DNA of 48,212 bases from Octopus sinensis (Eukaryota). The notes below the pieces were generated by a model. That model worked only from the letters and a program-made list of their open reading frames with translations, ran no database searches and was not told the origin of the DNA. Numbering within the stretch: position 1 is the stretch's first letter; the number at the start of each line of letters is the position of its first letter. The position numbers and the translations under genes are program-made. Of this stretch, positions 12,215 through 48,212 are shown piece by piece. The stretch covers positions 1 through 48,212 of the forward strand of contig NW_021834474.1 of NCBI RefSeq assembly GCF_006345805.1, written 5' to 3'.

Positions 12215-12355
12215 CTTCTTCTGTGCAGTTTTCTCCACTAAATTGGGGCTTACAGTTGCAGATAAAACCACCAGAAGGTGTCGGGGTACATACGCTTCTG
12301 TTGTTGCAAGGCTTTAAACGCACACAAACACTAAGCTTTTTCTGGCACAAATTTC
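12215..12355 (-). CDS. EGF exon of 141 nt that supplies the last Cys of EGF13 and the whole of EGF14
   Basis: Acceptor tttatcatttcag|GA at 12356/12355 and donor GAA G|GTAAGT at 12215/12214. Translation (G)NLCQKKLSVCVRLKPCNNRSVCTPTPSGGFICNCKPQFSGENCTEE. Confidence 0.9.
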
Positions 12356-12760
12356 CTGAAATGATAAAGTGACGTTTTAGTATAATTACACGCATGCATG
12401 TTGTAATATATAATATATATATATATATATATACCTTTTGAAATATGTATAATCATTTCTTATATTAATAGAAGGACCGAATTATTTGGAGGAGTATTGT
12501 CAGTTGATTTAATTTAATACATGACTAATATTTATCTCACTGACACAGGAGGCTTGAATTCATAATTCAGAGAATGTAGAAGGGAGGAACTTAATACTCT
12601 AAAGAATATGGTTCTACCGCTCTACCGTTTCCAAAACCCCATTCCTCTTATATATATAAATATACATACATACATACATACATATATATATATATATATA
12701 TATATATATATATATATATATATATATATATATATATATATATATATATATATATATATA

Positions 12761-13085
12761 TTAGGGAGTAAATCCAAACTTACAGGGAAAAATTAGATTT
12801 AGGATTAAATCCAATTTTAAAACTAGTAGTGTTTTATCTCTAATTTAAACCTCGCTAAGATAAATATTTCAATTACCTGAAGATTGACTGTAACCATAAC
12901 TCGAATTATTACGAATTGGACAGCCATGAAACGATCGTAGTGTTATACTCATTATCTTTTATTAAACTTTTAATACTTTTGATATATATTTAGAATAATA
13001 TAAATTAATTAATTTTATGTATTGGCTTAAGTTTTTCATTGTTTGATTTGCCTAATAGTGGTTTTATCTCTAATTTAATATAATA
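12761..13085 (+). mobile_element. Probable Penelope-like retroelement pLTR remnant carrying HHR-1, inside (TA)n
   Basis: Bounded by (TA)n tracts on both sides. An internal direct repeat tagt(g)gttttatctctaattta flanks the ribozyme. Its 3' part recurs at 36541-36670. Confidence 0.55.
12874..12942 (+). ncRNA. Minimal type-I hammerhead ribozyme motif with a weak stem I (HHR-1)
   Basis: CUGAAGA at 12877-12883. Stem II includes CUGU/ACAG, CCA/UGG and UCG/CGA. GAAAC-GAUC-GUA at 12928-12939. Stem I is only UAC/GUG. Confidence 0.6.
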
Positions 13086-13151
13086 TATATATATATATAT
13101 ATATATATATATATATATATATATATATATATATATATATATATATATAGC

Positions 13152-13363
13152 GATAGGTTTCAAATATTGACACAAGCCTAGCAAGTTCGAGGAAGGGGTA
13201 AGTTGATTACATTGACCCTGGTGCTCAACTGGTACTTATTTATCGACCCTGAAAGGATGAAAGGCAAGTCGACCACGGTAGAATTTGAACTCAGAACGTA
13301 AAGACAGACCAAATGCTACTAAGCATTTTGACCGGTGTGCAAACGATTCTGCCAGCTCGCCTT
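13152..13363 (-). mobile_element. SINE family C, inside (TA)n
   Basis: Reverse-complement family match. Confidence 0.8.
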
Positions 13364-13504
13364 ATATATATATATATATATATATATATATATATATATA
13401 TATATATATATATATAGTATAACAACAGATGAATGAATGAGACCTCTCTATTTATGTAAATAGAGGAATTTGTAATATAATATGTGGCAATTATTCGGTT
13501 GCCA

Positions 13505-13567
13505 TAATAAAACTCCGAGTTTCGGATGTCGGGGCGGAAATCTGCTCCGGCATCTTGTCAGTTATTA
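13505..13567 (-). ncRNA. Hammerhead ribozyme relic with a core G8-to-A change (HHR-5), probably inactive
   Basis: On the minus strand: stem I UAAUAA/UUAUUA, core CUGACAA instead of CUGACGA, GC-rich stem II with A.C mismatches, then GAAACUCGGAGUU. Confidence 0.6.
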
Positions 13568-13910
13568 AGACAAACAAAAATGTTATGAAAATGACCGTTA
13601 TTAAGAAAAGCTAAAGAGATATTAGAATGACCCTTAAATAAAGAGAAAAAAACCGAAAGAGGGGAAGGTAAAAAACACTCATAGAATTTGCGCATGCGCA
13701 CAGGTACATGCAAACACATGCGCACACGCACACCCACGTACATCTACCCACATGCTTATGCTCACACGAGTGTGAGTGAGCATATGCATATAGGAGTTTT
13801 ATTGATGAGGCGCATCTCTTTGCGTCCGGTGGAATGGTACTGTATGTAGCTAGTACAGATTTTGTTTTTACTTGATTACAGTGAGAAAGTATGAAAGATA
13901 CAGTCAGTAT

Positions 13911-14294
13911 GTGGAGACGCAATGGCCCAGTGGTTAGGGCAGCGGACTCGCGGTCGTAGGATCGCGGTTTCGATTCCCAGACCGGGCATTGTGAGTGTTT
14001 ATTGAGCGAAAACACCTAAAGCTCCACTAGGCTCCGGCAGGGAATGGTGGTGATCCCTGCTGTATTCTTCCACTACAACTTTCTCTCACTCTTACTTCCT
14101 GTTTCTGTTGTACCTGTATTTCAAAGGGCCGGCCTTGTCACTCTCTGTGTCACGCTGAATATCCCCGAAAACTACGTTAAGGGTGCACATGTCTGTGGAG
14201 TGCTCAACCACTTACACGTTAATTTCACGAGCAGGCTGTTCCGTTGATCGTATCAACCGGAACCCTCGTCGTCGTAACCGACGGAGTGCTCCTA
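13911..14294 (+). mobile_element. SINE family A, full length
   Basis: Family match. TSD acagtcagtat at 13900-13910 and 14295-14305. Confidence 0.9.
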
Positions 14295-45052: not shown

Positions 45053-45440
45053 CACAGCGTCAGTATGCATGTGTGTGTTGTATATATATAATATATTATA
45101 TATATAAATATAATATATATATATATATATACACATATGACTAACGTATACGTATATACAACACAAACACACACCATATATAATACATATATATATATAT
45201 ATATATATATATATATATATTATATATATATATATATATCTATTATATATATATATATTAATATATATATATACCTAATACATATATATATATAATATAT
45301 ATATATATATATATTATATATATTATATATATATATATATAGATATATACTCTATATATATATTATATATATATTATACAACATATGTACATATACTTTA
45401 TATATACACACAAACACATATATATACACATATATATATT

Positions 45441-45830
45441 CTTTTTATATTCTTTTACTCGTTTCAGTCATTTGACTGCGGCCATGCTGGAGCACCGCTT
45501 TTAGTCGAAGAAATCTCCCCCAGGACTAATTCTCTGTAACTCTAGTACTTTTTCTCTCAGGCTCTTTTGCCGAAGCACTAAGTTACGGGGACGTAAACAC
45601 CCCAACATCGATTGTCAAGTGATAGTGGGTGGTTGGGACAAATATAGACAAACAAATATATACATATATACGACGGTCTTCTTTCAGTTTCCGTCTACCA
45701 AATCCACTCATAAGGCTTTGGTCAGCCCAAGGCTATAGTAGAAGACACTTGGCCAAGTGCCACGCAGTGGAACTGAACTTGGACCCATGTGGTTGGGAAG
45801 CAAGCTTCTTGCCACACAGCCTCGCTTTCG
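45441..45830 (-). mobile_element. SINE family B, diverged
   Basis: Reverse-complement family match. Confidence 0.8.
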
Positions 45831-45949
45831 CCTGTATCTTGTGTAGGTATATATTTTGTACGCACACACACACATGTACGTATCTAGCTAGCTGGATAGA
45901 TAGCGAGAGAGAGAGAGAGAGAAGGAGAAGAGAAAGAGAAAATGCACAC

Positions 45950-46480
45950 GTGCGCGCGCGTGTGTGTGTGTGCTTGTGTGTGTGTGTGTGTGTGCTTGTG
46001 TGTGTGTGTGTGTGTGTGTGTGTGCTTGTGTGTGGTGTGTGTGTGCTTGTGGTGTGTGTGTGTGTGTGTTGTGTGTGTGTGTGTGTTGTGTGTTGTGGTG
46101 TGTGTGATTGTGTGTGTGTGATGTGTGTGTGCTTGTGTGTGTGTGTGTGGGTGCTGTGTGTGCTGTGTGTGTGTGTGTGTGCTTGTGTGTGTGTGTGTGC
46201 TGTGTGTGTGTGTGTGTGTGTGCTTGTGTTGTGTGTGTGTGTATGTGTGTGTGTGTGTGCTGTGTGTGTGTGAGTGTGTGTGATTGTTGTGTGTGTGTGC
46301 TTGTGTGTGTGTGCGTGGGTGTGTGCTTGTGTGTGTGCGTGTGTGCTGTGTGTGAGTGTGCGTGTGTGCTTGTGTGTGTGCGTGTGTGCTTGTGTGTGTG
46401 TGTGTATGTGTGTGTGTGCTTGTGTGTGTGTGTGTGTGTGTGTGTGTGTGTGTGTGTGTGTGTGTGTGTGTGTGTGTGTG
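45950..46480. repeat. Interrupted (TG)n microsatellite
   Basis: Direct inspection. Confidence 0.95.
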
Positions 46481-46918
46481 ATAGAGAGAGAAAGAGTACG
46501 AAGAAATATCCCAAAGAACTTGTGGGGAACAGCTGCAGCCCCAATTCCACCCCATCCCAACTTTTTGCCAAGTTGTAGAATGTAGAATGTCTGATGAATA
46601 AAGAGGAGAACATTGAGAAGTGACACTTCAGTTAATAGATAAGTGGTTAAATGAAGCCACTCTTCACTTTTATCAACGTTAATAATTATATTAGTAGTAC
46701 CAGAAGTATGGTTAGGAGTGGTGGTGTTGGTAGCGATGGTGGCGGTGATACGGTGCTATAATGGTGGTGGTGTGGTACTGATCTTAGTACTGCTGTGGCT
46801 TGCAGTGAAGTTTATATTGTTGTTTGACCCCAAGTTAGCCACAATCGAAAAACAAAATAGAAGCCCAAAATGATTAAAGTCGAAAGCATTCCATTTGTGA
46901 CCATCTATTGTGACCAAT

Positions 46919-47329
46919 AGGCGCAGGAGTGGCTGTGTGGTAAGTAGCTTGTTTACCAGCCACATGGTTCCGGGTTCAGTCCCACTGCGTGGCACCTTGG
47001 GCAAGTGTCTTCTACTATAGCCTCGGGCCGACCAAAGCCTTGTGAGTGGATTTGGTAGACGGAAACTGAAAGAAGCCCGTCGTATATATGTATATATATA
47101 TATATATGCGTGTGTGTGTTTGTGTGAGTGTGTTTGTCCCCCTAGCATTGCTTGACAACCGATGCTGGTGTGTTTATGTCCCCGTTACTTAGCGGTTCGG
47201 CAAAAGAGACCGATAGAATAAGTACTGGGCTTACAAAAGAATAAGTCCCGGGGTCGAGTTGCTCGATTAAAGGCGGTGCTCCAGCATGGCCGCAGTCAAA
47301 TGACTGAAACAAGTAAAAGAGTAAAAGAG
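46919..47329 (+). mobile_element. SINE family B
   Basis: Full-length family match. Confidence 0.9.
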
Positions 47330-47707
47330 AATCTCTTGTTTTTGTTGATGATGTAGAAAAATTTCACACACACACACTGAGGATAGGAAGAAACGGGGTC
47401 AGAGGACGGGGACGTTTCCCTATTAATATCTGTAAATCAATTGCTCATTCTCTCCCGCAACTGGGCCTTAATCTTTCAGGATAAGGGCTAAAATTAGAAA
47501 GGTTTCATTTGAAAGTATGGCTCAACTGACCAACCCGAGGTCATCTGTGTGAATGTGTATGTGTATGTGTGTGTATGTGTGTGTATGTTTGTGCGTGTGC
47601 ATGTATGTAATATGAGTGCAACGGTTATAGCACAGCTAATGAGCTATAACTGAGTCGTGGCCACTACTTTCCCGAAAACAGTTTTGTGAATAGTTTCGTT
47701 TGCTCAC

Positions 47708-48212
47708 CTGGTAGACCGACAATTTTGATATTAACCAATGCATATGCCGTCTTTGACGGCAAGCCGTTATCTGATACTTTCACCGTGAAGTTGATATCCT
47801 TGAGATCAAGTCGTAACGTATCATTGAGTCGAAGGCGACCGCTGTGTTTATCTAAAGATAGAATCGGATATTTTTGTTCTTGTATCTCGTAAGTAATCTG
47901 TCTGTTGTAGTCTTCTTTGGAATCATCGGTGGCGTTTAAATAGCCGATAGTCTTGCCAGGTTTTTCAAACTGAAAGACTAAGAAAGAATATAAAGGTTTT
48001 GAAAATTGTGGCGCTTCTTTGTTGTTTTCAACAACATCAACTAAAAGTTGACGATCCCGAAAAGTGTTTCCCTTGAAAGCAGCTCGTATGTTTAATGCGA
48101 ACTGATGACCAACAGGTTTGTCTATAGCTGTCATCGTGCTGATTTCACCAGAGTGTTTATTAATCATGAAATATATCAGTTCCCCCTGAGTAAACAGCTG
48201 GTAAGACACAGC
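47708..48212 (-). CDS. Cadherin-repeat exon (partial, continues past window end) of a cadherin-FN3-EGF gene
   Basis: Frame is open from 48212 (AVSYQLF...). It has cadherin motifs FMINKHSGEI, NNKEAPQFSKPLY, IGYLNATDD, LDKHSGRL and VKVSDNGLPSKT. Donor CCA G|GTGAG at 47708/47707, phase 1. Confidence 0.93.

Follow-up and report, generated by a model that had tools for sequence, protein, structure and literature searches.

The stretch of DNA analyzed here comprises 48,212 nucleotides (nt) of the Octopus sinensis genome (contig NW_021834474.1, positions 1 to 48,212 of the forward strand; NCBI RefSeq assembly GCF_006345805.1) and is hereafter called the window. It is AT-rich, repeat-laden animal DNA with four coding exons on the minus strand. 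A first-pass annotation of these exons described cadherin repeats, one fibronectin type III (FN3) domain, and 14 tandem EGF repeats without laminin G (LamG) domains, recognized no named family with this layout, and proposed a lineage-specific adhesion or signaling protein made by exon shuffling. The locus therefore raises the question of what protein these exons belong to, and whether that protein is peculiar to one lineage. We report here that the interval very probably encodes the ectodomain of a G-protein-coupled receptor (GPCR) of the adhesion class from a conserved protostome family, and that the long, register-spliced EGF array is the distinctive feature of the octopus gene.

The encoded peptide matches adhesion GPCRs of related Octopus species

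The peptide spliced from the window is 98% identical to protein P0001 (1,130 amino acids [aa]) and 92% identical to P0002 from O. bimaculoides, which carries the NCBI automatic name "ADGRL4 isoform X3." Both proteins contain Cadherin, EGF, GPS (3e-9), and 7tm_2 (PF00002; 1.8e-40) matches in Pfam. In the O. vulgaris model P0008 ("ADGRE1-like"; 1,461 aa, N-terminally truncated), all 14 EGF repeats are followed by GPS and 7tm_2, with E values close to those of P0001 (GPS, 4e-9 versus 3e-9; PF00002, 2.9e-40 versus 1.8e-40). GAIN subdomain matches were found in orthologues. The cleavage site within GPS is the canonical HL|T, followed by TSFSVLL, and the motif HLTSF(S/A)VLL is conserved. Against solved structures, the GAIN and seven-transmembrane (7TM) half matched adhesion GPCRs throughout its top Protein Data Bank (PDB) hits, with the highest scores for ADGRG6 (197 bits), ADGRG2 (190), ADGRG4 (163), ADGRD1 (152), and ADGRL3 (141); scores for ADGRL4 (107 bits) and ADGRE5 (81 to 87 bits) were well below all five. 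The features of an adhesion GPCR are all present, namely (i) a GAIN/GPS region with H-L|T, (ii) a 7tm_2 domain, and (iii) an ectodomain of adhesion modules, the first two of which were seen in relatives and lie outside the window. The near-identical Octopus models show a predicted full protein that begins with a signal peptide, two cadherin repeats, an FN3 domain, and the EGF array; a segment with weak similarity to HormR comes next, followed by GAIN with its GPS (HL|T), a class B 7TM domain, and a short tail. The HormR model of Pfam, PF02793, is recorded for the spider member P0239. Laminin_G was absent from P0001, P0002, P0008, P0083, and six other orthologues in Pfam scans, so the absence of LamG noted in the first-pass annotation extends even to full-length proteins. 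The proposal of an adhesion or signaling protein built from phase-1 modules likewise held, except that the exons seen very probably supply only the ectodomain of such a receptor, GPS and 7tm_2 following in the 98% and 92% identical relatives.

Two side observations concern the intracellular parts of these proteins. Most mollusc orthologues (P0083 and P0157-P0170) end in EFTRL, ELTYL, or DLTKL, which are conserved and resemble PDZ ligands; the Octopus models P0001 and P0008 end in ...NGDAYQ instead, and Octopus could have an alternative or missed last exon. In addition, two short-EGF bivalve forms, P0169 (Mercenaria X3) and P0164 (a bivalve Logan contig), have 8 extra residues after the first transmembrane segment (PRSASMSR and PGSRTTPR, respectively). 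This insert in the first intracellular loop is absent from the long Mercenaria isoform and may be an alternative micro-exon in bivalve forms.

Four in-frame exons encode the N-terminal part of the receptor

The coding part of the locus is arranged as follows, with all exon and intron coordinates given on the minus strand.

Exon 1, 48212 (window edge) to 47708, minus strand: 505 nt; part of cadherin repeat 1 and cadherin repeat 2
Exon 1, first part, 48015..48212, minus strand: C-terminal two-thirds of cadherin repeat 1, by direct reading
Exon 1, second part, 47708..48014, minus strand: cadherin repeat 2; donor CAG|GTGAGC, phase 1
Intron 1, 42063..47707, minus strand: 5.6 kb, repeat-rich
Exon 2, 42062 to 41808, minus strand: 255 nt, 85 aa; one FN3 domain; symmetric phase 1-1
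Intron 2, 40612..41807, minus strand: 1.2 kb
Exon 3, 40611 to 39118, minus strand: 1494 nt, 498 aa; EGF1 to EGF12 and EGF13 up to its conserved Gly; phase 1-1
Internal alternative 5' splice site in EGF2, 40369..40375, minus strand: last exonic base G at 40375, GTGAGT at 40374-40369; phase 1
Intron 3, 12356..39117, minus strand: 26.8 kb; interspersed repeats, microsatellites, and a LINE fragment
Exon 4, 12355 to 12215, minus strand: 141 nt, 47 aa; end of EGF13 and EGF14; phase 1-1
Next intron, at least its first 12.2 kb, 1..12214, minus strand: without a further exon

All acceptors are AG and all donors are GT. The three junctions (G|AA, G|TT, and G|GA) are in phase 1 and join the four exons in frame, exactly as read in the first-pass annotation. 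Exon 2 is bordered by ...TTGCAG|AA and CAG|GTAAGT, exon 3 by TTTTAG|TT and AAG|GTAAGA, and exon 4 by TTTCAG|GA and AAG|GTAAGT. Exon 4 is 100% identical to residues 395-441 of P0001, and because it ends in a strong donor, the gene continues downstream. Searches of the window by tblastn with P0001 and P0002 returned nothing past residues 441 and 454, respectively, and intron 3 held no further open reading frame (ORF) with an EGF pattern; the exons that encode GAIN/GPS, the 7TM domain, and the HormR-like segment before them lie outside the window. At the other end, the frame of exon 1 runs off the window and aligns with P0001 from residue 63 on, so that some 62 residues of the N terminus, the signal peptide among them, fall outside. 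The gene is thus incomplete at both ends of the interval, and the cadherin content of the window amounts to only about 1.6 repeats. The complete cadherin repeat 1 (EC1) of P0001 matches Pfam Cadherin at 1.7e-5. Cadherin repeat 2 (EC2) matches PF00028 at 4e-15 (best stretch, residues 83-164), its AxDxD and DxGxP motifs show no variation in alignment A1, and a Foldseek search of the PDB with a model of the EC2-FN3-EGF1 segment placed cadherin ectodomains on top.

The linker between EC1 and EC2 (about 48015-48040) has the sequence VVENNKEAPQF in place of the DxNDNxPxF usual in cadherins, and the orthologues are similarly degenerate. Judging by this motif, calcium binding at the linker may be partial or lost.

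Exon 2 encodes an FN3 domain

Searched alone against Pfam, octopus exon 2 gave no fn3 match at an E value of 0.1 or below. Its identity was established through relatives: in bivalve and spider orthologues, fn3 was detected above the Pfam cutoff exactly between cadherin repeat 2 and EGF1, and octopus exon 2 aligns over its full length with these Pfam-positive domains, retaining the B-strand Trp and the Tyr-corner motif. A profile of the exon 2 domain matched only FN3 domains in the PDB, among them those of neogenin (5e-13), FN3con (2e-9), titin, LAR phosphatases, Dscam, contactins, fibronectin, and Tencon. AlphaFold modeling of the EC2-FN3-EGF1 segment with a 17-sequence alignment reached a pLDDT of 89 and gave the exon 2 domain a seven-strand sandwich; the single-sequence model (pLDDT, 31) was unusable. 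The Foldseek search with the three-domain model left the FN3 question undecided, since two-domain cadherin structures dominate its PDB matches because EC2 is part of the model.

In the scorpion Centruroides, one of two predicted isoforms (P0199 versus P0200) lacks about 96 aa and with them the greater part of FN3. Judging by these predictions, the corresponding exon may be a cassette in this genus.

In-register alternative splicing of the EGF stalk in gene models and assembled contigs

Pfam detected EGF in 12 stretches of exon 3 (1e-60), and a scan for the cysteine pattern plus the junction-spanning repeat gave 14 repeats in total: 12 wholly within exon 3, one across the exon 3/4 junction, and one in exon 4. 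Together with the Pfam and FN3 profile results, this count agrees with the order of cadherin, FN3, and 14 EGF domains given in the first-pass annotation. O-fucose and O-glucose consensus patterns occur in 8 and 2 of the 14 repeats, respectively.

P0001 and P0002 contain a shorter array. Both use the internal donor within exon 3 (GTT G|GTGAGT, near consensus), producing the junction "...CPDGYVG|NLCQKK..." and leaving exon 3 at the Gly codon of EGF2. Joined to exon 4, this donor removes 419 aa and reduces the array from 14 EGFs to 3. The terminal donor of exon 3 sits at the equivalent Gly of EGF13, and the internal splice is therefore in register and creates a hybrid EGF. The same Gly-of-EGF2 junction recurs in two bivalves, with a loss of 413 aa in Mercenaria and of 180 aa in Dreissena, and EGF blocks are swapped at this position in Lingula. 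By another route, the whole symmetric array exon is skipped in another cephalopod (minus 593 aa), and one spider isoform is without 145 aa, or about four EGFs. Two Logan contigs of the array-skipping cephalopod show both extremes. L001 (5,984 nt) has a single ORF (547-5544; 1,665 aa) with the full EGF array, and L002 (3,678 nt) has an ORF (359-3559; 1,066 aa) with one EGF. Both are intronless, have flanks of the length of untranslated regions, and run from cadherin repeats through to the 7TM domain. They look like assembled mRNA, and the question of whether all modules share one transcript is thereby answered for a close relative, not for O. sinensis itself. In this sense, and by the in-frame junctions, the placement of the four exons in one transcript was borne out. 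Taken together, the gene models and the assembled contigs document stalks of 14, 3, and 1 EGFs, which arise either through the EGF2-Gly donor or through skipping of the array exon.

The 14-EGF form implies that exon 3 remains coding beyond the internal donor. Its frame is uninterrupted over all 498 codons, and none of the EGF cysteines is missing. The repeats share only 36% identity with one another and are old, and most of them pair with the same-numbered EGF in other cephalopods. Relative to O. vulgaris P0008, exon 3 shows 2 substitutions in 498 residues, compared with 6 in 227 for exons 1 and 2. On account of the intact frame and cysteines, the age of the repeats, the same-numbered pairing, and the low divergence from O. 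vulgaris, the sequence past the internal donor is clearly coding. Beyond cephalopods, one-to-one correspondence of EGFs is not demonstrable, the signal being saturated. By lineage, EGF number ranges from 10 to 15 in long mollusc models, 18 to 37 in Lingula, and 5 to 7 in arthropods. In our search of the literature, no report was found of the 14-EGF form, of the in-register splicing, or of the wide distribution of the family described below; the splicing at the EGF2 donor appears unreported.

The upper end of the range belongs to P0196 of the brachiopod Lingula anatina (2,620 aa; 37 EGFs by pattern count), which bears the automatic name "neurogenic locus notch homolog 1." A second Lingula isoform has 18 EGFs, a 930-aa block being exchanged for a 76-aa block.

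The receptor family is spread across protostomes

The distribution of the family was examined by searches with a distant orthologue over its whole length (P0083) and with the GPS-7TM region of P0160. The combination of Cadherin, EGF array, GPS, and 7tm_2, often with fn3, was found in gastropods, bivalves, a chiton, cephalopods, Lingula, a nemertean, and an annelid. In arthropods the layout reaches every major group, with members in spiders, scorpions, horseshoe crabs, ticks, sea spiders, myriapods, crustaceans, and hemimetabolous insects. The P0160 search recovered no vertebrate protein with the cadherin-FN3-EGF-GPS-7TM layout, and no nematode protein was among the 120 best GPS-7TM matches listed. 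Searches by phmmer with the cadherin, FN3, and EGF1 domains returned mostly giant Fat/Dachsous-type cadherins; the 7TM half was common to 4 of 156 sequences (query set included). Automatic names of family members conflict, including ADGRE1, E2, L4, B1, G4, and G6, CELSR1-3, LAT-2, and Notch1.

The GPS-7TM region was also analyzed in a quick maximum-likelihood tree, where 103 sequences formed a single clade (SH-aLRT, 99) that holds all 84 proteins matching the family FN3 profile. Within it, molluscs (98) and arthropods (99) form clades of their own. Outside it fall LRR-type "G6/G2-like" receptors, which form a separate clade, along with three proteins from fish and one each from an echinoderm and a sponge. 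These results show one ancient orthologous family spread across protostomes, and the suggestion of a lineage-specific protein did not survive them.

Comparison with named receptors and with C. elegans FMIL-1

Cadherin and EGF domains occur together in several well-known proteins, none of which has the layout of the octopus receptor. Long runs of non-calcium-binding EGFs with O-fucose and O-glucose patterns resemble Notch, and cadherin repeats followed by EGFs recall Fat and the type III cadherins. The octopus protein differs from these, and from Crumbs and fibropellin, in that its anchor is a 7TM receptor; it is without LNR, ankyrin repeats, LamG, or a single-pass segment with a catenin-binding tail, and the companion domains of Notch and Crumbs (LNR/NOD/ankyrin and LamG) were absent from Pfam scans of full-length models. 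Among adhesion GPCRs, the EGF-TM7 receptors (ADGRE: CD97 and EMR1-4) and ADGRL4/ELTD1 likewise place tandem EGFs before GAIN-7TM and alter EGF number by splicing, which in CD97 and EMR2 changes ligand binding. NCBI automatic names for the Octopus proteins draw on ADGRE and ADGRL4. EGF-TM7 receptors, however, start directly with 2 to 6 mostly calcium-binding EGFs and have no cadherin or FN3 domain, whereas in octopus these domains precede the EGFs, and their 7TM domains are more distant (81 to 87 bits for E5 and 107 for L4, versus 197 for G6). ADGRG6/GPR126, ADGRG2/GPR64, and ADGRG4/GPR112 provide the closest solved GAIN-7TM structures, and the nearest nonfamily invertebrate 7TM domains are those named "G6/G2-like." The ectodomains of ADGRG6 (CUB-PTX-SEA) and of the invertebrate LRR relatives are entirely unlike that of the octopus family, and the LRR group is a separate clade. 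The octopus adhesion GPCR expansion of Ritschard et al. (2019), which has LRR and Death domains, is a different group (PMC6408891) and probably corresponds to this LRR clade of our tree.

Reviews leave many invertebrate adhesion GPCR clusters unnamed and describe no cadherin-bearing type other than CELSR (PMC6900090, PMC8584163). The only studied counterpart by domain order is C. elegans FMIL-1 (Flamingo-like 1; UniProt U4PMB9), a 1,029-aa receptor with the order Cad1-Cad2-FnIII-EGF-HormR-GAIN-7TM and a short tail (PMC13684637; bioRxiv, September 2026). FMIL-1 acts presynaptically and induces synapses; every ectodomain module is required for its function, and its tail and GAIN cleavage are dispensable (PMC13684637). 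Its ectodomain binds UNC-40/DCC in a worm interactome study (PMC13174244). The octopus family shares with it EC1 (1.7e-5), EC2 (4e-15), FN3, EGF, GAIN-7TM, the domain order, and the short tail; the octopus segment in the HormR position matches that domain weakly. The sizes are similar: 1,066 aa for the 1-EGF cephalopod form and 1,130 aa for the 3-EGF Octopus form. The link is one of architecture and size alone. The two differ in that FMIL-1 has one EGF, compared with 14 in the octopus long form (14, 3, or 1), and in that FMIL-1, mostly uncleaved, carries a Gly where cleavage would occur, in contrast to the canonical HL|T retained in the octopus family. Neither EGF-array splicing nor a distribution beyond nematodes has been reported for FMIL-1. 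The first-pass annotation, which recognized no named family with this layout, therefore needs amending: FMIL-1 largely represents a known family with the same layout, albeit with one EGF (PMC13684637). The domain order is already described, and the octopus gene is a further receptor of the kind just described in the worm.

Weighing of alternative explanations

Two alternatives concern the gene model. The first holds that only the 3-EGF form is real, such that about 1.26 kb of exon 3 past the internal donor is intronic and the 14-EGF protein is a prediction artifact. This donor is near consensus and is used both by P0001, which is listed without a source and is possibly the annotated product of this genome, and by the sole O. 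bimaculoides model recovered (X3). The 498-codon frame nonetheless retains all of its EGF cysteines and differs from O. vulgaris at fewer positions than the constitutive exons do. The NCBI model P0008 includes the whole array, the pattern scan detects 14 EGFs in the collinear array of an intronless contig from another cephalopod, and long models with 10 to 15 EGFs occur across molluscs. We therefore consider a 3-EGF-only gene highly unlikely. Slightly less credible still is the wrong merger of two neighboring genes, one encoding cadherin and FN3 domains and the other rich in EGFs. Introns of 5.6 kb and 1.2 kb do set these modules apart, and the mRNA-like contigs are those of another cephalopod, but the junctions are all in frame with canonical splice sites, single intronless contigs unite cadherin, FN3, EGFs, and 7TM, and the same order recurs in more than 80 proteins from many phyla.

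The remaining alternatives concern the origin of the protein. Recent assembly by exon shuffling as a cephalopod- or mollusc-specific protein would suit the symmetric 1-1 phase of all four exons, a classic substrate for shuffling, and the failure to find a vertebrate protein of the same layout. It is hard to reconcile with a Cad-FN3-EGF-GPS-7TM layout in at least five protostome phyla, a gene tree that recovers mollusc and arthropod clades, the same domain order in C. elegans FMIL-1, and the 36% mutual identity of the old EGF repeats, and we regard it as extremely improbable. Given this spread of phyla, the tree, the FMIL-1 order, and the age of the EGFs, any shuffling took place at or before the base of the protostomes. 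A more serious candidate, although still improbable, is a CELSR/Flamingo (ADGRC) receptor, that is, a shortened paralogue of the seven-pass cadherins. Among named adhesion GPCRs, cadherin repeats occur in CELSR receptors only, and these share the combination of cadherin, EGF, HormR-like, GAIN, and 7TM domains with the octopus family; members from Mizuhopecten, Pomacea, Patella, and Dreissena bear automatic "CELSR1/2/3-like" names; and FMIL-1 has been placed in the CELSR subfamily by domain combination (PMC13684637). Several features separate the two nonetheless. Full-length models of the octopus family have two cadherin repeats, one FN3 domain, and an uninterrupted EGF array. CELSR proteins have about nine cadherin repeats and LamG domains interleaved with few EGFs, at a length of about 3,000 aa, and are not known to carry an FN3 domain. 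LamG was found in no Pfam-scanned family member, nor among the Pfam domains precomputed for the 120 best 7TM matches, from a search whose length window reached 3134 aa and admitted CELSR-sized proteins. The closest solved 7TM structures are ADGRG6, G2, G4, and D1, and the nearest nonfamily 7TM domains are those of the LRR-type "G6/G2-like" receptors, which speaks indirectly against placement in ADGRC.

Several points weigh against membership in a protostome adhesion GPCR family as we describe it. GAIN, GPS, and 7TM are assigned from 92% to 98% identical proteins of sister species, their exons lying outside the window. The segment after EGF14 matches HRM weakly (Pfam E = 0.021; 15.6 bits versus a cutoff of 26.2). 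For octopus itself, the isoforms are known as gene models, the contigs that resemble mRNA being those of another cephalopod. FMIL-1 is linked by architecture and size, and because it needs neither GAIN cleavage nor the intracellular tail, activation by a tethered agonist may not apply. With these points taken into account, an adhesion GPCR ectodomain from a conserved protostome family remains the explanation that we hold with high confidence.

Repeats and other features of the window

Apart from the receptor exons, the window is rich in repeats. An ORF fragment within intron 3 (16861-17262, plus strand) matches Pfam zf-RVT, a reverse-transcriptase zinc-binding region (1.3e-8), and most likely represents what is left of the C terminus of a non-LTR retrotransposon. 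An interspersed repeat of about 240 bp occurs in nine copies on both strands, six of them full length. These match the reference copy at 94 to 97.5% identity, as would suit a young family of SINE-like elements; ARAGORN detected no tRNA-like sequence anywhere in the window, interspersed repeats included. A second dispersed repeat of about 280 to 320 bp, present in 16 copies from 3157 to 47173 with 75 to 95% identity to its reference copy, looks like an older family. Long microsatellite or low-complexity tracts contain spurious ORFs of 100 to 300 aa, and a CA/GT-rich tract near 46 kb gives a GC-skew spike of 0.355. A 150-aa ORF of internally repeated Gly/Pro/Ala/Arg-rich units ("GAFYVPPA...") is probably a minisatellite.

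Repeat of about 240 bp, full copies, both strands represented in the family: 2318-2557, 5547-5785, 14006-14244, 22773-23012, 24602-24840, and 25664-25902; plus three partial copies
Second dispersed repeat, examples: 27515-27832, 28203-28400, and 46919-47173
Microsatellite or low-complexity tracts: 9511-10377, 14557-15279, 32538-33417, 34601-35048, and 45629-46626
Probable minisatellite ORF: 37314-37763, minus strand

Possible mechanism and implications

How such a receptor might act can be outlined from established adhesion GPCR biology and the FMIL-1 study (PMC13684637), with less certainty than its identity. The cadherin-FN3 tip, carried on the EGF stalk, would bind a partner, located either in the matrix or on a different cell. 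The GAIN domain would cleave itself at HL|T, with the fragments remaining associated, and binding or a pulling force on the outer fragment would be relayed to the 7TM domain and on to G-protein signaling, either by exposure of the tethered agonist TSFSVLL or allosterically. Splicing of the EGFs may change the reach of the tip or the ligand repertoire, by analogy with the CD97 and EMR2 isoforms, and the comparison with FMIL-1 makes it plausible that the receptor has a part in neural wiring. Putting these elements together, we tentatively propose a scheme that we think possible but rather less than even in likelihood. The octopus gene, FMIL-1, and the other members would form a single protostome-wide family lacking in vertebrates and Drosophila. 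EGF donors at the conserved Gly, kept since before the bivalve-cephalopod split, would act as a length switch (1, 3, or 14 EGFs) that tunes the reach or the partner of the tip, possibly contributing to the choice of synaptic partners in the octopus with its large nervous system.

For annotation, the locus illustrates two traps: a cadherin-FN3-EGF fragment cut by the edge of a window can pass for a new architecture, and 11 EGFs go unseen in gene models built on the internal donor. More broadly, the study of adhesion GPCRs rests mainly on nine vertebrate families and a few fly and worm genes, a map from which the octopus family is missing. Splicing of EGFs in register offers a simple and testable means by which the ectodomain can vary in length with the binding tip and the signaling core unchanged. 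A tie to FMIL-1 would give the worm synapse result a broad comparative context and would supply candidate wiring receptors in cephalopods, in arthropod vectors such as ticks, and in bivalves. The relevance of the family lies mainly in adhesion GPCR evolution and cephalopod neurobiology.

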